From NCBI GenBank assembly GCA_946965045.2, contig OX337230.1, positions 4,154,001-4,218,000 of the forward strand: a stretch of DNA of 64,000 nucleotides, read 5' to 3'. This DNA is from Epithemia pelagica (taxonomy: Eukaryota > Protista > Bacillariophyta). Made by a program: the position numbers and the translations under genes. This document shows, piece after piece, positions 43,670 to 53,135 of the stretch. Below the pieces are notes generated by a model, which was not told the DNA's origin, made no database searches, and saw nothing but the letters and a program-made list of their open reading frames with translations. The stretch's first letter is position 1. Every line of letters begins with the position of its first letter.

Positions 43670-45169
43670 TCAAAAAATGTCGCCGGGGGAGGGATTGTTG
43701 AGGGACTGGAGTGGAATCGGTGTCGTATCATCCTGTGTGTGTTGTGGCGGTGGTTGTTGTTGTTGTTGTTGTTGTGGTGGTGGTTGTGGCAATTGTGGTG
43801 GTGTTGATTGATCCGGTGCAGTCCCTCCCTGCATTTGGGCCAACATGGATTGAAATTGCTGATGGCTCAAGGCCGTCGCCGCGGCAAACCCGGCCGCAAA
43901 CTGCGACGCAGCCGAACTCGCTTGATAAGCCGCGGCCATGTTGGGATTGGCAAAGGCCAGTTGGTTCGCCACAGCGAGCGGACCAGCCGATTTATCGCCC
44001 ATATTGTTCATGCTTCCCATAGTAAAGGGAAGGTTAAAGGGCATGGGCGTCAAAAAGTTGGATTGGGGAAGGACCACGGGAGCCGTTGGGTTGGCCGCCG
44101 TCATGGCAGCCGCTCCACCCGTCAATTGGTTTTCCGAAGCTCCCAACGACTGTTGAAAGGCGGCGAGGGCATGTTGATCGCTGGGCGTGAGTTTCGGCCC
44201 CGTCGTCGTACTGTCGGCCATACTCCCCGTTGGTTTGGGAGTTGGCATGGACGACGAGGATCCCGAATAAATGGGCATGCGAGCCTTGGGACCTCCTTGC
44301 AGTGTGCATTGCAAGAGAATGGATTCATCGTCCGCCTTTTCCGGTACCGGATGGACTTCGGAAATTTTGTAAAGGTCCGGTTCATGGTCCGGGTCCGCGG
44401 CTTGTTTTTCCGAAACGCCCGGACGCCTCATTCTCTTGCACAAATGCGGGAGACCCCGGAGAAACAAGGGATGGTAATAACTATTTCGGTCGCGGCTCTG
44501 GGTAATCCGTCGAAATCCCCACTGTCACACGACAATCCAGAAAAAAAGACAAACACGTTAGACACAACTCATTGGAGGCAACCTAGTAACCCTATCCGTT
44601 GAAAGTATATACCCTGCACGCACCCCATTGGCTTGCCGAATAAAGGAGGAAAACTTGGCATGTTCAAAGTAGGTTGGAATGACTCGGACTTCAAATTCAC
44701 GAGGTTTCAAGACGCGCCACGATCTCCCATGGGGCATCCACGAAATGATATCCGCCAAGTCTTGTCGACTCAGAATCGAGTGCATTTTGGCTGGAAAGTT
44801 GGGCACGCGGCCCGGCGGGGTCAAGGGCGTGAGGGGATCGGGATCGGTTTCGGACGAAAAGTCCTTGTAATAAAAAAAGGGAAAGGGTTGAATTTCCTTC
44901 TTGGGCATAAAGGCCGACATGGGTGGAACGGGAGGTCCGGCATAAATTCCGGCATCTTCTTGTGCCAAGGAAATTTTCTTGGCCGTAGACTCGAATATAT
45001 CTTCCTCGTGATGAGGATCCAAAGGATGATGATGATGACTCTCGTCTCGATCTCGTTTCATTCCCACCGTTGCCACCGTCGTCGATGCCGCCGCAAGGTG
45101 GTGGTCATCAAAGGTGATGTGATCAAAGTTCATGCTAGTCAAGCTCGAAGCAGAGGATACTGGATGCAT
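43670..45169 (-). CDS. HSF: Heat shock transcription factor, 2 exons
   Basis: FPAKMHSIL...IISWMPHGRSW...FSSFIRQANG|WGFRR...YYHPLFLRGLPHL; GT-AG intron 44522-44623. Confidence 0.93.
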
Positions 45170-45520: not shown

Positions 45521-45613
45521 ACCCTCGGTATCAGTGTCCACTGCTTAGCTGTTTTTTGTCTGTGCCACTTCCATAGGTTCCCAAGTGGACACAGACAACA
45601 AAATTTTCTTTTT
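45521..45613 (+). repeat. Left TIR (93 bp)
   Basis: Exact reverse complement of 51915-52007, checked base by base. Contains an internal near-palindrome (GTCTGTGCCACTT...AAGTGGACACAGAC). Confidence 0.93.
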
Positions 45614-45777
45614 CACAATTCTATTTTTCTGATTTCATCAAATTTCCATTACTATCGAGCAAGCCCTCCTCCCGTTGGAATCAAACGCATGCCCACCATC
45701 CCACTGAATTCAAATCTCACTTTGTCACATCGCATGCTCTGTATTACTCATCTGCTGTTTTGCTGATTTGATGCGGT

Positions 45778-48700
45778 TTGACAATGGCGGCAGATTCCTC
45801 CGACGGAGTAAGTCGACTCAATCGCGAGCTTCATGCACTCAACAATTGGAAAGCCGAACTCTTCTGCAGTGACATTATTGGATATGAGAATCCTGTTGAT
45901 CCCTTTCAATTTACTGATAGGTCAAGGTACAAAGCCACACGGTGCAAACCTACCAACAAGACACAGACACATCCTATTGTTTTTGACTCTTCCAAATTCC
46001 CACCAACTAAAGAAGGCTTGAACAAGCTTTTATGTCACTTGAAGAAACTTGGAATTGCTCATGGTATGAATCTTATCTCTCGAAGTTCCAGTGGAGTTTT
46101 ATCTTGCTATCGATGCCGCACTTTTATTCGCAACAAAGCACTGTCATCTGACAAAAGTGCTACCGACAACGATCTTTGTATTCCCATTGACTCTTCGAAA
46201 GATTTTGATGAAGATGGCATTCAACTTGGGATACGGTCCTACACATATCATCGTGATAAATCAAATGAACGTCCTGATGGAAAGTCGTCTCAAAGGGGAA
46301 CCTGCAGTGGTCGTCCATTGCACATTGAGGAAACATGCAAGGTGTCTTTACGCTTTGGTATTCGTGAAGGACATGATGGATACATCTATTTGAAACAAGG
46401 GTGTGGATATGCATTCCATACAAACCATCCGAAACCCATTCCGGGAGAACTCTCCCTGAAATCAAGACATCTATCAGAGTCAGCAGTAGCTGTTATCAAG
46501 AGTGGTGGTAATGCTTCAATTGGATCTGGATCTGTTCGATACTTTGTGCTCGAGCATAAACAGGAACTTATATCGAGGGGATCAATGCAACGCCTTCAAA
46601 TGGTACCCTCATTTCTGCAAAATTCGTCTAATCCTGTCAATGAGCACTCAACTGCATCGATGATGATCAACTGGATGAGGAAGAATGCAAGCGATCCAAA
46701 TGTCAGATTGCGCTATTGTTTTCTTTCTTGTCGAAAGGAAGGTCGGGCTTTCCATCGCCATTCAAAAGGACGACCACCAACCAATGGACACTTATCAATT
46801 TCAGACGTTGAAGATAGAATGACTTATGTTGATGTTCTTGAGTCCACACACAAGACAAGTAACGACTTTCAAGAAGAGACAACAGACATTGGCCTTGAAT
46901 CGAATGAAGCATTAACAGACGCTTCAAATGCCTCAAGGGAGATAAACCAGGATCTCCAAATTGACGTTTCTTCCAAACGTGTTTTACTTGGTGCTGCATG
47001 GATTGACATGGAAGCTTATCGCCTGTTCCTCCGTTTTCCAGAGATTCTTTTTGTTGATTCTACGCACAAGACGAATAATGAAGGAAGACCATTGCTCTTA
47101 ATGTGTGGCAGAGACCAAAATGGTAAAGCCTTTGTTGTTTGTCGGATTTTTATGCCCAATGAAACAAGTGCATTCTATCGATGGGTCTTTCTCAAGTGTC
47201 TCCCATCTATGATTGGCAGAGATCACTTACAACGAGTTCGCCTAGTAGTCACTGATGGTGACGCGCAAGAGTTTGATGCAGTCGAAGAAGCATGTTGCTC
47301 AGTCCTACCATTGGTTAGAAGATCCCGATGTATGTATCACATTGTTCAAAAGACGTTTGAACGTTCAATAAACAATCATTATTGCTTGGACGCATCGTCA
47401 CATATAGTTTTGAAAGAGATAAAAAGATGGATATACAGTTGGTCTGATGGAAGCTCATGCGTCACAAAGACACAATATGAGTTATCAAAGGGACTTCTGC
47501 TAAAACGAATTCAGAGTGGGGTGTTGGAGCCGTTTTTCACACCGACGGGATTAACAGAAATCGAGCGGTGGATTATAGAGAAAATACTTCCACAGGAAAG
47601 CTCTACTGCCTTTTGGAGAAAAACATATCACCGATGTTTTGATGAATACATGAACAATTCGGGAGAAGCAATGAATCGTTCATGCAAAAATTCAGACATC
47701 TCAGCGAAACCAAACATGTGCATGGCTACGGCAGCCAACGCAATGCTTAACCATTCTTCTCTTGCAGCCAAAGATCGAAGAGTGAATCTTGCTCGACAAC
47801 TTTCAGAAGTTCCTTTATACATTCGACATGATTCAAAGCATAATATCAAGGCTTTATCTGGTGTTTCAAATATGGCACGTCACATGGTTATCCAACAATA
47901 TCGCCAACGAACCCAATACACTGTTGCAAGGTATGCCCCCAACCAATGGTACGTTCTCCGAAATTCTATAAGTGGCTTGTCGGAATTTAGAACGAGCACA
48001 CTTTGCCCTCCTGTGTTTAAGAATGCATGGAAAGTGGTAAACAATGATGGATATCTACAGTGTTCCTGTGGTTACATGCACAGGCACGGGATCCCTTGTC
48101 GTCATCTATTTGCGATTGAACCAGAATATGACACTTCAGACATCGATGTGCGATGGCATCTTGCATATGGTTATTATGCCCATTCTGATGGATTTTCCTC
48201 CCTTACAGAGGCATATGCTGATCTCCAGAAAATGGATCAGATTGGGCTTCGTTTGAAAACAGACATCTCCACAGAAGAAGACTATCCTTATATCTGGTCA
48301 GGCACCGAATATACTATTGACGACATCCTAGAAATTGCAAACAGTCCAGTTCCTCTATGCTGGAACTATACTGTCTCGGAATATCCAACTCAGTATCAGC
48401 CAATAGAAAGAGATCGTACAGGAAAAGAAAGAGAAGATATAGATGACACTGAGTTTCCTTTCACACAAGAGACTACAATGGAGGAGGAGATCGTCGACTC
48501 TGATAAAGTGGACTGCAATGAGTATCAGTTTCAAATGCCATTATCCGACGAGGTAAAGCAGTCAGCTTTGATAACCTTTTTCAAGGATATGCTTCCCTTG
48601 TTCAACTGCCGCTCATCTCGGAAACATCTCATGACAATTCTAAGTGAAGCGCGACAAAACCAATCCCGTGATTTAGGAAGAAAACGCAGACGTGTACTTG

Positions 48701-48804
48701 AGGGCAACAGGACGACAAATGAAATGGACCAATTTATTTCAAGCAATATCGACTTCGACAATTCTCGAAGTTCATATCAACAAACTTACTACAGAAACAG
48801 ATAA
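45778..48804 (+). CDS. MULE transposase with SWIM Zn finger (intact, 1008 aa)
   Basis: FVDSTHKTN, VVTDGD, RCMYH and NNSGEAMN motifs; SWIM CSCGYMHRHGIPCRH. Confidence 0.92.
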   Translation: MTMAADSSDGVSRLNRELHALNNWKAELFCSDIIGYENPVDPFQFTDRSRYKATRCKPTNKTQTHPIVFDSSKFPPTKEGLNKLLCHLKKLGIAHGMNLISRSSSGVLSCYRCRTFIRNKALSSDKSATDNDLCIPIDSSKDFDEDGIQLGIRSYTYHRDKSNERPDGKSSQRGTCSGRPLHIEETCKVSLRFGIREGHDGYIYLKQGCGYAFHTNHPKPIPGELSLKSRHLSESAVAVIKSGGNASIGSGSVRYFVLEHKQELISRGSMQRLQMVPSFLQNSSNPVNEHSTASMMINWMRKNASDPNVRLRYCFLSCRKEGRAFHRHSKGRPPTNGHLSISDVEDRMTYVDVLESTHKTSNDFQEETTDIGLESNEALTDASNASREINQDLQIDVSSKRVLLGAAWIDMEAYRLFLRFPEILFVDSTHKTNNEGRPLLLMCGRDQNGKAFVVCRIFMPNETSAFYRWVFLKCLPSMIGRDHLQRVRLVVTDGDAQEFDAVEEACCSVLPLVRRSRCMYHIVQKTFERSINNHYCLDASSHIVLKEIKRWIYSWSDGSSCVTKTQYELSKGLLLKRIQSGVLEPFFTPTGLTEIERWIIEKILPQESSTAFWRKTYHRCFDEYMNNSGEAMNRSCKNSDISAKPNMCMATAANAMLNHSSLAAKDRRVNLARQLSEVPLYIRHDSKHNIKALSGVSNMARHMVIQQYRQRTQYTVARYAPNQWYVLRNSISGLSEFRTSTLCPPVFKNAWKVVNNDGYLQCSCGYMHRHGIPCRHLFAIEPEYDTSDIDVRWHLAYGYYAHSDGFSSLTEAYADLQKMDQIGLRLKTDISTEEDYPYIWSGTEYTIDDILEIANSPVPLCWNYTVSEYPTQYQPIERDRTGKEREDIDDTEFPFTQETTMEEEIVDSDKVDCNEYQFQMPLSDEVKQSALITFFKDMLPLFNCRSSRKHLMTILSEARQNQSRDLGRKRRRVLEGNRTTNEMDQFISSNIDFDNSRSSYQQTYYRNR

Positions 48805-48839
48805 TGATGTGATTAGAAACATGAATTTTTGTGTGTCAT

Positions 48840-50294
48840 TTATACTTGTTTGAGGTAGTCACGAATACATTCTTCAATTGGAGTCGAGCCCAGATCATTA
48901 TTGTTTTTCCCCACAACTGACGTTTTCATATACAAGGAAAGAACAAAGACGTCTGAATCAACAACTTTTTTTGAAACACAATGGTATTCTTGAGGGTTGA
49001 AAATCAGGATGTCCAGATTTCGAAGAGCAACTTTGTGACCAAGTTCAGGAAAGACAAAGTAGCATAAGACTTCTTCGTTTTGACAAACAGATTCTTCAGG
49101 ACTCATTGCAACGACCACAGAGTACCCATAGTCTTGGTCTTTGTGAGCTGCTAGGAAAACATTCCGTCCGAAGGATATAGCACTGAAGAAGGTAGATTTC
49201 TTTCCATCGACTCCCAAAGTCGGGATGTCTTGAATCTTAATGAAATTCGAAAAGCCAAAAATGTAGGACCAGTCCGCCCAAGCGTAGAACTCCTCTTCGA
49301 TCTGTTTGACAAACCTGACCATCGTTTTCAAGTCTTTCTTGCTCATCAAATGTAACTTGGATGGAACAATTCCTTTCCCACCTCGGTTTGCCGTCATTCC
49401 AACTGTTACATACGATGATTTGTTTGAATCTTGTGCCACAAATTGTTTTTTGCCTCTCTGTTGGAACTTTACCTGACTCTCAAGTTTCGCGAGAACCTCG
49501 ATGACTTTGTCTTCGAAAGCAAAGGTGGTAAGGTTCTTGTTTCTCGGAGTTTTGAGGAAGACGGGAAGCTCAGCTTTTTGTGGACGAAACATGGCCCCAC
49601 CTTGTCCCACATCAGTTGTTAGAAACAATGACAATGAAATGAAGTCCAACTGAGAAGATGTTTGATTGTTAGAAACAAACAAAGACTCAGATGCGTCATC
49701 TTTGAAAACACAGCATTTTTTGTCAAGAACTTGTTCAGACAGTGTGTGTTCACTTGAGGCATTGTCAACCTTCTTCAGTTCCATCTGCTTCTTTGATTTT
49801 TTATTCCGATGGTATCGCTGATTTTTAGATCTTGCCTTGGAGCATCCATGCAATATAACCTGTCCAACTTGTGTTCGTCGTGAAGAAGGCTTGTTAGACT
49901 TGAACGTATGTATGATGTTGGTGATAGAGCAATCGTTTTTTTTGTAGCTGTGCTTGCTAAGGTTTCGGATCAACTTTGAAGCAGTTTTCTTCTTTGTAGT
50001 GTGCGATGAATTCAGTCCCGCCCTATGGATAGAAGATCTATCCAAGCGCAAGGCGGTGAGACCCTTGTCATTTGATGCATGACACATGCTCGAAGAGCAT
50101 GTTGGGTCTGATCGGCCACCCTTGAGAACTTTTGCGTCGCCACATGATTCCATCTTTTCTGCCAGTCCCGCCCAATGGAAAGAAGATCTATCCACGGACA
50201 AGGCGGTGAGACCCTTGCCATTGGAATGGCACACACTCATAGAGTGTGCTGGGTCTGATTGGCCACCCTTAAGAACTTTTTTGGCAACAGACAT
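48840..50294 (-). CDS. TET/JBP-like Fe(II)-dependent dioxygenase (484 aa)
   Basis: H384-K-D386 (49137-49145) and distal H438 (48981-48983) in AHKDQD...YFVFPELGHKVALRNLDILIFNPQEYHCVS...SLYMK. This matches the compact double-stranded beta-helix pattern of TET/JBP enzymes. Lys/Arg-rich N-terminal half. Confidence 0.68.
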   Translation of the reverse strand: MSVAKKVLKGGQSDPAHSMSVCHSNGKGLTALSVDRSSFHWAGLAEKMESCGDAKVLKGGRSDPTCSSSMCHASNDKGLTALRLDRSSIHRAGLNSSHTTKKKTASKLIRNLSKHSYKKNDCSITNIIHTFKSNKPSSRRTQVGQVILHGCSKARSKNQRYHRNKKSKKQMELKKVDNASSEHTLSEQVLDKKCCVFKDDASESLFVSNNQTSSQLDFISLSLFLTTDVGQGGAMFRPQKAELPVFLKTPRNKNLTTFAFEDKVIEVLAKLESQVKFQQRGKKQFVAQDSNKSSYVTVGMTANRGGKGIVPSKLHLMSKKDLKTMVRFVKQIEEEFYAWADWSYIFGFSNFIKIQDIPTLGVDGKKSTFFSAISFGRNVFLAAHKDQDYGYSVVVAMSPEESVCQNEEVLCYFVFPELGHKVALRNLDILIFNPQEYHCVSKKVVDSDVFVLSLYMKTSVVGKNNNDLGSTPIEECIRDYLKQV

Positions 50295-50436
50295 TTAGAA
50301 GAAGACCACAACAGACTTGAGCAGGAGTAAACTTTTCTTTTAATCTGGAAAGAACAATGTGCAACAAAAAATATAAGCAAGGAGGTAAGCAAGGAGTTGG
50401 AGCAATATACGTGACATCCATTCAAACAACAACCCA

Positions 50437-51723
50437 ACTTACCAATGTAGAGTTATGCTTGTTCAAAGATGGTCAGTCCCAAGAGACAAAAAAGTCGTAC
50501 CACTCCACTCAATCCAGTACAACTTTTTCTGTAGCAATTCGCCGGAATGCGGTTTACAACTGTTGTAAAGAGGGGTTAGAGACGGTTCTAATGCAAAAGA
50601 GTAGACTCCAATCTGACTTACCAATGTAGAGTTATGCTTGTTCAAAGATTGACAGTCCCAAGAGACAAAAAAGTCGTACCACTCCACTCAATCCAGTACA
50701 ACTTTTTCTGTAGCAATTCGCCAGAATGCGGTTTACAACTGTTGTAAAGAGGGGTTAGAGACGGTTCTAATGCAAAAGAGTAGACTCCAATCTGACTTAC
50801 CAATGTAGAGTTATGCTTGTTCAAAGATTGACAGTCCCAAGAGACAAAAAAGTCGTACCACTCCACTCAATCCAGTACAACTTTTTCTGTAGCAATTCGC
50901 CAGAATGCGGTTTACAACTGTTGTAAAGAGGGGTTAGAGACGGTTGTAATGCAAAAGAGTAGACTCCAATCTGACTTACCAATGTAGAGTTATGCTTGTT
51001 CAAAGATTGACAGTCCCAAGAGACAAAAAAGTCGTACCACTCCACTCAATCCAGTACAACTTTTTCTGTAGCAATTCGCCAGAATGCGGTTTACAACTGT
51101 TGTAAAGAGGGGTTAGAGACGGTTCTAATGCAAAAGAGTAGACTCCAATCTGACTTACCAATGTAGAGTTATGCTTGTTCAAAGATTGACAGTCCCAAGA
51201 GACAAAAAAGTCGTACCACTCCACTCAATCCAGTACAACTTTTTCTGTAGCAATTCGCCAGAATGCGGTTTACAACTGTTGTAAAGAGGGGTTAGAGACG
51301 GTTCTAATGCAAAAGAGTAGACTCCAATCTGACTTACCAATGTAGAGTTATGCTTGTTCAAAGATTGACAGTCCCAAGAGACAAAAAAGTCGTACCACTC
51401 CACTCAATCCAGTACAACTTTTTCTGTAGCAATTCGCCAGAATGCGGTTTACAACTGTTGTAAAGAGGGGTTAGAGACGGTTCTAATGCAAAAGAGTAGA
51501 CTCCAATCTGACTTACCAATGTAGAGTTATGCTTGTTCAAAGATTGACAGTCCCAAGAGACAAAAAAGTCGTACCACTCCACTCAATCCAGTACAACTTT
51601 TTCTGTAGCAATTCGCCAGAATGCGGTCTACAACTGTTGTAAAGAGGGGTTAGAGACGGTTCTAATGCAAAAGAGTAGACTCCAATCTGACTTACCAATG
51701 TAGAGTTATGCTTGTTCAAAGAT
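50437..51723. repeat. Tandem array of 179-bp units, 7 full copies plus a 34-bp partial
   Basis: ACTTACCAATG recurs at 50437, 50616, ... 51690 (exact 179 period); only a few substitutions between units. Confidence 0.97.
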
Positions 51724-51914
51724 GAGGGATGGGTCAATGGTTTTTTGTTGTTGGTTGTGCTTTGTGCAGACTGTGTAGTGTGCTTGTTGTTTTGGAGAGT
51801 GTGAGAGAAGAACTAGCGAGTTGGTCAGTGGTGCTTCAACGGTCAAAACTAGCGAGCATGTCATTCTAGGGAGTTAAATTACAGGTAAAGGGAATTTCTA
51901 GCAAGGAAACCGGA

Positions 51915-52007
51915 AAAAAGAAAATTTTGTTGTCTGTGTCCACTTGGGAACCTATGGAAGTGGCACAGACAAAAAACAGCTAAGCAGTGGACACTGATAC
52001 CGAGGGT
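51915..52007 (-). repeat. Right TIR (93 bp)
   Basis: Exact reverse complement of 45521-45613. Confidence 0.93.
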
Positions 52008-52699: not shown

Positions 52700-53135
52700 T
52701 TCACTCTATCGAAACGCACTGGCTTTTGGATTGCTCACAAAGATCTTGGACCAAGACACTCGATCGAAACTCACTGACTCCATGATTGATCACAAAGATT
52801 GCCGACCAAGACACTAGATCGAAACTCATTGGCTTTGGGATTGATCGCGAAGATCTTCGACCAAGACACTCGATCGAAACTCACTGTCTCCAGGATTGAT
52901 CGCAAATATCTTCGAACAAGACACTTTTTCAAAACTCAGTTGCTCCAGGACTGCTCACAAAGATCGTCGAACAAAAGACACTCTATCGAAACTCACTGTC
53001 TTTAGAATTGATTCGAACAAGACACTCGATCGAAACTCACTGACTCCAGGATTGATCGCAACGATCTTCGAACAAGACACGATATTGAAACTCAGTTGCT
53101 CCAGGATTTATCACAAACCTCTTCGAACAAGGCAC
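52700..53135. repeat. Degenerate 55-bp minisatellite (~8 copies)
   Basis: (C/A)CAAGACACT recurs at 52751, 52806, 52861 and 52916; consensus ~GACCAAGACACTCGATCGAAACTCACTGACTCCAGGATTGATCGCAAAGATCTTC. Confidence 0.85.

Follow-up and report, generated by a model that had tools for sequence, protein, structure and literature searches.

A Mutator-like transposon of the diatom Epithemia pelagica carries a conserved gene for a predicted TET/JBP-fold dioxygenase

A stretch of 64,000 nt of contig OX337230.1 from the diatom Epithemia pelagica, which we designate the window, contains at positions 45521-52007 a DNA transposon whose features support its assignment to the Mutator superfamily (Mutator-like elements, MULEs) as an intact, young and apparently autonomous element. 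Besides the transposase gene, the element carries a convergent gene, called here the cargo, for a protein that probably belongs to a remote family with the fold of the TET/JBP DNA dioxygenases. Taken as a whole, the reading that we favour, with modest confidence, is that of a selected, MULE-borne TET/JBP-fold gene whose product would oxidise a modified base and so weaken the silencing of the element. The features of the element are as follows (positions in the window).

45521-45613, no strand: left terminal inverted repeat (TIR), 93 nt, 100% complementary to 51915-52007
45784-48804, + strand: MULE transposase gene, 1006 aa from the ATG
47047-47352, + strand: MULE catalytic (RNase H-like) domain, residues 424-525 of the 1008-aa open reading frame (ORF), covering profile positions 2-99 of 99 in PF10551
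48805-48839, no strand: spacer of 35 bp between the convergent stop codons, from the ORF coordinates; equal 35-bp spacing in copies L004 and L005
48840-50294, - strand: cargo gene, 484 aa, an uninterrupted ORF with N-terminal repeats, a basic linker and a C-terminal dioxygenase domain of predicted TET/JBP fold
48843-49730, - strand: dioxygenase domain, residues 189-484; double-stranded beta-helix (DSBH) of TET/JBP type in an AlphaFold (AF2) model
48924-48938, - strand: last DSBH strand, S453-L-Y455-M-K457, with Y and K invariant and, judging from the sequence pattern, no Arg at the position of TET2 R1896 / NgTET1 R289
48981-48983, - strand: distal iron-binding His, H438, invariant in A3 (the alignment of 53 sequences used for the model)
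49137-49145, - strand: HxD iron-binding motif H384, K385, D386 (H, 49143-49145; D, 49137-49139), with H and D invariant in A3
50013-50280, - strand: two coding repeats of ~50 aa at the cargo N-terminus (LKGGxSDP...KGLTAL...DRSS), followed by a Lys/Arg-rich linker
50437-51723, no strand: tandem array of 7.2 units of 179 bp with 99% matches (Tandem Repeats Finder), between the cargo 5' end and the right TIR
51915-52007, no strand: right TIR, 93 nt; homology with sibling copies ends at 52006/52007

At its tip the left TIR reads (A)CCCTCGGTATCAG; a 31-nt stretch of the tip is found in the window at the two TIRs only, where 100 shuffles gave an expectation of 0. Homology with four sibling copies begins at 45521/45522 and halts exactly at the outer ends of the TIRs, which are therefore the true ends of the element; the DNA between them is AT-richer (GC ~0.41-0.42) than its surroundings (0.45-0.49). 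The transposase ORF opens at a TTG (45778, 1008 aa), and its likely start is the ATG at 45784, in agreement with the start of the homolog from a related element, L001, whose transposase is 48% identical over its full length. Pfam recognized in the transposase the domains MULE (PF10551, E 3e-15, 56.9 bits vs a cutoff of 27.6), ZSWIM1-3 RNaseH-like (PF21056, E 3e-12) and SWIM (PF04434, E 5e-4, 20.0 bits vs a cutoff of 19.6); candidate D/D/E motifs at residues 423, 490 and 624, as well as the SWIM finger CxC...CxH at residue 760, are kept in the transposase of L001. The original prediction, made from the nucleotide sequence alone, had described perfect 93-bp TIRs, an uninterrupted 1008-aa MULE transposase and a convergent intact ORF whose stop lies 35 bp from that of the transposase, and all of this was reproduced here; its view of an intact, young and apparently autonomous Mutator element is likewise supported.

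The N-terminus of the cargo contains a direct repeat (50013-50133 and 50163-50280, 83% identity) whose motif is common to the cargo, P0002 and P0003, and this is followed by a linker (residues 96-188) with 25% K+R. A coding tandem repeat of 2.6 units of 180 bp in L001 (10038-10511) is the counterpart of these N-terminal repeats. The public gene call for the cargo family begins at Met171 (314 aa) and omits this N-terminal part; despite this shorter call, the full frame of 484 codons is open in three copies of the element.

At E≤1e-3, 1,079 cluster representatives make up the large, unnamed family to which the dioxygenase domain belongs. An AF2 model of residues 189-484, built with A3, had a predicted local distance difference test score (pLDDT) of 89.9 and a predicted TM-score (pTM) of 0.90. 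In a Foldseek search of the PDB with this model, the first 26 matches were all CMD1, CcTet, NgTET1 or TET2 (E 1e-8 to 1e-6, TMq 0.48-0.57), with CMD1 as the top match, and NMAD-1, AlkB and FTO came after them (TMq 0.33-0.41). VIA-align, which is independent of Foldseek and was run against 48,161 chains, retrieved the same four enzymes first (TET2, Z 17.9; NgTET1, 15.7; CMD1, 15.1; CcTet, 14.0), followed by ALKBH1 (Z 12.2) and then by all others at 12.2 or less. The aligned stretch was of 204-246 residues for the TET/JBP enzymes vs ~155-190 for the AlkB-like proteins, and the N-terminal extension of the model aligned with TET2 and CMD1 (model range 1-280/287, VIA-align). Additionally, JBP2, JBP1, NgTet1 and CMD1 led the matches among the Swiss-Prot models of the AlphaFold database (AFDB), with a TM of up to 0.61 for the JBP proteins; the AFDB clusters were led by fungal proteins annotated as 'Tet-like' and 'JBP1/TET', one of them associated with a KDZ transposase; and the ESM Atlas yielded clusters with Tet_JBP or PF20515 at TM 0.64-0.67, and closer, unnamed clusters at TM 0.76-0.83, one of which is recorded as Bacillariophyta. 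Together, these comparisons of a predicted structure support the cargo as a member of a remote TET/JBP-fold family, rather than of the AlkB or P4H fold, that is not a demonstrable member of a Pfam family. The claim that the cargo is TET/JBP-like thus stands for the fold, with TET/JBP enzymes first in five structure libraries, and fails for Pfam, where Tet_JBP was not matched at E≤1; a grouping with 2-oxoglutarate (2OG) oxygenases that do not act on nucleic acids was not seen, the fold grouping instead with the nucleic-acid TET/JBP enzymes.

The cargo shares with CMD1 (Chlamydomonas), CcTet (Coprinopsis), NgTET1 (Naegleria), human TET2 and the kinetoplastid JBP1 and JBP2 the DSBH core, the TET/JBP N-terminal extension and the HxD...H triad, with a sequence identity of 10-16%; it differs from them in being borne by a transposon, in having its own N-terminal repeats and basic region, and in having neither a Cys-rich or CXXC module nor, apparently, a conserved equivalent of the Arg R1896/R289. 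The iron ligands of the original prediction were recovered as H384, D386 and H438, which are invariant across 53 relatives and intact in three copies of the element; in the same relatives, R280, D388, F415, D428, Y455, K457 and N466 are also invariant.

To estimate the number of copies, word depth was taken from three DNA assemblies of the same organism, with contigs of up to 509 kb. Depth was 430-610 within the element vs 60-69 in the unique flank, which suggests ~7-9 copies at ≥95% identity; members of the transposase and cargo protein clusters were found in seven contigs of one assembly. The copies, 98.4-98.8% identical, occupy unrelated sites and differ in their flanks. Of these, L005 is complete (5,592 bp) and has identical, perfect 93-nt TIRs, and in L004 the left end is cut by the end of the contig; the window, L004 and L005 have ORFs of 1006 and 484 codons that are all open from identical ATGs. 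L003 is 98.4% identical and colinear with the window from 45522 to 52007 and no further. Some copies have degenerated. That in L003 is dead: its reading frames are broken by stops (codon 254 of the transposase, codon 364 of the cargo) and by a frameshift from the loss of 1 bp (window-equivalent 48193), and an 8.2-kb Copia-type retrotransposon (RVT_2, 1893-aa ORF; L003 1984-10161) lies in the 5' part of its cargo; the 5 bp of window-equivalent 50027-50031 are duplicated around this insertion. The copy in L006 is truncated at window-equivalent 48033 and interrupted by a 1.4-kb insertion (L006 6566-7998) at window-equivalent 50224-50236, with 13 nt present on both sides.

The cargo is present in every copy of the element family that we examined, and lies within the TIRs in the window, L005, L003, L001 and L002. 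Moreover, all three locatable homologs of the cargo from a set of 5.8 billion proteins, in the same assembly, have a MULE transposase as their tail-to-tail neighbour. L001 and L002 represent diverged subfamilies in which the element's own TIRs enclose both genes: the cargo and the transposase are, respectively, 45% and 48% identical to those of the window in L001, whose TIR tip is also recognizably related to that of the window, and 40% and 24% identical in L002. The layout is common to the three subfamilies, with a TIR, a 178-179-bp array, the cargo facing the transposase, and a TIR. Among the intact copies (window, L004, L005), omega was 0.19-0.42 for the cargo and 0.21-0.28 for the transposase; between subfamilies, dS is saturated and the dN of the dioxygenase domain (0.37-0.68) is similar to that of the transposase, the N-terminal third of the cargo being less constrained than the domain. 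The dN/dS of the young copies against the dead L003, which was near neutral (22 non-synonymous vs 9 synonymous changes) because of decay after insertion, was set aside as a measure of selection in favour of the intact-copy and between-subfamily comparisons. The copy in the window has private cargo residues at positions 139, 158, 161, 266, 269, 284, 352 and 404 (e.g., I352 vs N, C404 vs R), where L004, L005, L003 and collapsed read contigs agree with each other; none of them is an invariant position of the family. These results show that the element has in the cargo a stable component, under purifying selection and inherited together with the transposase across subfamilies. The further TIR-bounded copies with cargo that the original prediction had anticipated do exist, as two siblings with both ORFs intact and two diverged subfamilies, and neither copies of these elements devoid of the cargo nor signs of an unselected, captured fragment were seen, since the siblings and the two subfamilies keep the gene with omega <1.

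The tandem array starts 143 bp upstream of the ATG of the cargo. Equivalent arrays occupy the matching position in L001 (6.5 units of 178 bp) and L002 (6.7 units of 179 bp), and in the latter the annotated start codon falls within each unit. The number of units ranges from 1.2 to 7.2 among copies that are 98% identical, and no homology between the units of different subfamilies was found beyond a 19-28-bp motif at E 0.015-0.05; the period and position of the array are thus conserved and its sequence is not. A promoter or enhancer array, binding sites for the transposase and phasing at nucleosome length are candidate roles. Word depth climbs to ~40,000 at the TIR tip (45521-45570), the unique flank having 60-69, and in one contig the tip (45546) is fused directly to the array (50437), forming a TIR-plus-array deletion derivative. 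There are therefore probably many non-autonomous derivatives sharing these termini.

The anatomy of the element, the fold class of the cargo, its conserved metal site, its co-inheritance with the transposase and the purifying selection on it are established. By analogy with the enzymes and transposons that it resembles, we infer its activity as an enzyme, the substrate and co-substrate, and the advantage to the element. In the reading that we favour, the cargo protein would enter the nucleus and bind DNA through its basic linker, where it would oxidise a modified base, most probably 5-methylcytosine (5mC), that is, a mark that the host deposits on transposons; oxidation of the mark would weaken methylation-based silencing, and the element would stay transcribable and mobile. 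A similar role in countering methylation-based silencing has been proposed for the enzyme of TET-carrying transposons from fungi (PMC12730594). The CpG content of the element offers weak support for past cytosine methylation: at 0.68, its observed/expected ratio lies under the range of 0.73-1.03 spanned by 45 chunks of equal size elsewhere in the window, and TpG and CpA are slightly raised.

Several observations weigh against this reading. The CpG depletion is mild, and the TM-scores of 0.5-0.6 to the known enzymes are moderate. Comparison of the cargo with Pfam gave no match at E≤1, including Tet_JBP (PF12851) and 2OG-FeII_Oxy_6 (PF20515); only one of the 53 relatives matched Tet_JBP, with an E of 0.0017 that falls below any curated threshold, and a search of the PDB sequences with the cargo family profile retrieved no TET/JBP chain and a single chance match. 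The counts behind the omega values among young copies are small (7-14 non-synonymous vs 10 synonymous). In addition to these, the canonical 2OG-binding Arg of the last strand appears to be missing, the target-site duplications (TSDs) expected of a MULE are not found, and related MULEs do without the gene; these points are taken up below.

TET2 and NgTET1 grip the co-substrate by two Args (R1261/R1896 and R224/R289, respectively); the last strand provides the second of these, after which come an aromatic residue that stacks on the base (+6) and a His or Arg that contacts it (+8), and CMD1 cannot use 2OG because it has no working basic residue at the last-strand site (PMC7854593). The last strand of the cargo reads V-F-V-L-S453-L-Y455-M-K457, and the position of the Arg would be a Val or a Cys in either plausible register, the register having been set by the sequence pattern and not by a residue-level structural superposition. 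The pair Y455/K457 resembles the aromatic residue, with a basic residue or His two positions on, of TET2 (Y1902/H1904), NgTET1 (F295/H297) and CMD1 (F416/R418) (PMC7854593). Because the usual Arg appears to be missing, the co-substrate is uncertain; the invariant R280 and K457 might stand in for that Arg. The cargo could be an active TET/JBP-fold enzyme that writes, instead of erasing, a mark on its own DNA or on neighbouring chromatin, either by hydroxylating thymine, as JBP does, or by adding a group onto 5mC by means of a co-substrate other than 2OG, the role that vitamin C has for CMD1. In favour of this, the Foldseek search of the PDB had CMD1 as its top match, JBP2 and JBP1 are the top matches among the Swiss-Prot models, and the Arg of the last strand appears to be absent; in CMD1, the lack of a working basic residue at that site accounts for the failure to use 2OG (PMC7854593). 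However, the ranking of folds cannot separate substrates, TET2 being first by VIA-align, and R280 and K457 could still hold 2OG. We regard the writing of a mark as possible, with a clearly lower probability than its erasure.

A duplication of the target site, of 8-11 bp, is a defining feature of MULEs, and its absence here conflicts with it. No TSD was found at any of the five complete TET-carrying elements (window, L005, L003, L001 and L002) adjacent to the TIRs, at offsets, or in flanks of 40 nt and 300 nt: the longest direct word common to the 40-nt flanks was of 5 nt or less, and nothing adjacent appeared with the 300-nt flanks. Short (TA/TTA) and inverted-flank patterns were rejected as inconsistent. 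The first base is A or T at all 12 flank ends. The missing duplications hint at an unusual integration chemistry, and would suit a dioxygenase that serves transposition or repair, for instance by cleaning damaged or alkylated bases at sites of excision and insertion, or that acts on RNA or protein, without a role in epigenetics. AlkB-family repair and RNA enzymes are indeed the next-best structural matches (Z 10-12). Nevertheless, every library ranks all TET/JBP enzymes above all AlkB-like ones, with longer aligned regions, and TET2 and CMD1 align with the model over its N-terminal extension as well, which leaves this explanation improbable.

Related MULEs set limits to the association. L014 (8746-15372) contains, in the same genome, a fourth MULE subfamily with a transposase 43% identical and TIRs of 57 nt, laid out in the same manner, as a TIR, the transposase, convergent ORFs, an array of 3.8 units of 175 bp, and a TIR; this TET-less element has a TSD of 9-10 bp in a CT-rich context. 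Its slot holds two convergent ORFs of 195 and 335 aa, which overlap, are not TET-like and belong to no recognizable family, and neither BLAST nor the family hidden Markov model (HMM) found the dioxygenase in it. L011 (2936-8735), from an unrelated sequencing run, is a MULE with a transposase 37% identical and an unrelated, convergent 627-aa gene of no recognized family. Since L014 and L011 hold other genes in the slot, the TET-like gene is not essential to the MULE clade, which seems to have a cargo slot filled by it in some lineages only. The contigs of P0005 and P0015, two distant members of the cargo family, are of 6.5 kb or less, showed no MULE remnant and are uninformative on breadth; the pairing with a MULE was seen within this genome.

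That related MULEs manage without the gene, together with the near-neutral comparison with the dead L003, could speak for a host gene passively captured, or decaying, with no benefit to the element. This is already largely refuted and in our view very improbable: three subfamilies separated by saturated dS have all retained the gene in one place and orientation and with its catalytic residues, the 484-codon ORF is open in three young copies with omega 0.19-0.42, and the cargo and the transposase have diverged in step (45% and 48% identity). Least probable of all is that the pair is a domesticated host locus that is no longer mobile, which would agree with the lack of TSDs at the five complete elements and is contradicted by the ~7-9 near-identical copies (98.4-98.8%) at unrelated sites with different flanks, the perfect TIRs, the decayed or interrupted siblings, the very high depth of the TIR tips and the existence of a TIR-plus-array deletion derivative.

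Beyond the reading of a base-oxidising, anti-silencing cargo, one could imagine a Mutator lineage devoid of TSDs whose TET-fold enzyme rewrites 5mC through an alternative, CMD1-like co-substrate, acting in cis on its own array, the 178-179-bp period of which approximates one nucleosome repeat, as a self-contained anti-silencing device in diatoms. We consider this extended form improbable.

TET/JBP-encoding DNA transposons were reportedly treated by Iyer et al. in 2014 for fungi. TET/JBP genes have since been catalogued in ten lineages of DNA transposons, all fungal, with KDZ (Kyakuja, Dileera, Zisupton), hAT, Harbinger, IS3EU, EnSpm, ESTA, Plavaka and Helitron as carriers (Kojima, 2025; PMC12730594). 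That work mentions neither diatoms nor algae, and MuDR figures in it solely as carrying other epigenetic genes (PMC12730594). The element from the window resembles the fungal ones in being a cut-and-paste element with an intact TET/JBP-type gene beside the transposase that is kept across families, but differs from them in its diatom host, in a Mutator/MuDR carrier outside the ten lineages, in the conserved 178-179-bp array adjoining the cargo, in the lack of a TSD and in a distinct protein family. Among the fungal proteins, those of the 'PE type' escape searches by sequence (HHpred E 1.4 to CMD1) and were recognized by structure (PMC12730594), as occurs with the cargo. Mutator-like elements with accessory genes include plant VANDAL/Hiun, with VANC, and Phytophthora MuDR with SET (PMC12730594); in these, as would be the case here, the second gene is actually or presumably aimed at the epigenetic control of the host, although the accessory gene in the window encodes a predicted TET/JBP-fold oxygenase and not VANC or a SET methyltransferase. 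With canonical MULE/MuDR elements, finally, it shares the MULE DDE domain, the SWIM zinc finger, long TIRs and a size of 5.6-6.8 kb, and departs from them in the lack of the TSD. The literature searched contained nothing pairing Mutator-like elements or MuDR with a TET/JBP dioxygenase cargo, nor diatoms with TET/JBP transposons. According to the original prediction, a Mutator-borne TET in a diatom is not known to have been described; this holds, in the literature searched, for the Mutator carrier and the diatom, whereas transposons carrying TET genes as such have precedents in fungi (PMC12730594).

As to the surroundings of the element, an ORF on the - strand (44558-45169) has an HSF-type DNA-binding domain (PF00447, E 3.7e-13) and probably continues past an intron, because only the first 57 of the 100 profile positions (1-57) were matched. 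The HSF-type DNA-binding family is greatly expanded in diatoms. The left TIR lies ~350 bp upstream of the ATG of this ORF, in its likely promoter region. To the right, ~700 bp from the element, there is a degenerate 55-bp tandem repeat (52702-53135; 8.1 units, 72% matches). A relative of the transposase is annotated from Cylindrotheca closterium, and the Atlas clusters nearest the cargo are recorded as Bacillariophyta; like the HSF-type domain, both point to a diatom host. A Dis3 neighbour in the Atlas narrowed the host no further than to the eukaryotes.

Three features of the element are odd: the lack of a TSD, the arrays of conserved period and the apparently missing 2OG-binding Arg. The first two pose separate puzzles on how these elements move and are regulated. 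As for the third, the 1,079 representatives of the cargo family, which forms a distinct, large and unnamed branch of the TET/JBP-fold proteins, may have an unusual co-substrate chemistry, of interest to enzymologists and to makers of tools for epigenome editing. The sister MULE subfamilies with and without the enzyme, present in one genome, constitute a natural experiment in which its effect on methylation is directly comparable. Transposons carrying TET/JBP genes have so far been fungal, and their occurrence as a Mutator element in a diatom-like host would suggest that enzymatic counter-silencing arose repeatedly and may be widespread among eukaryotic microbes.

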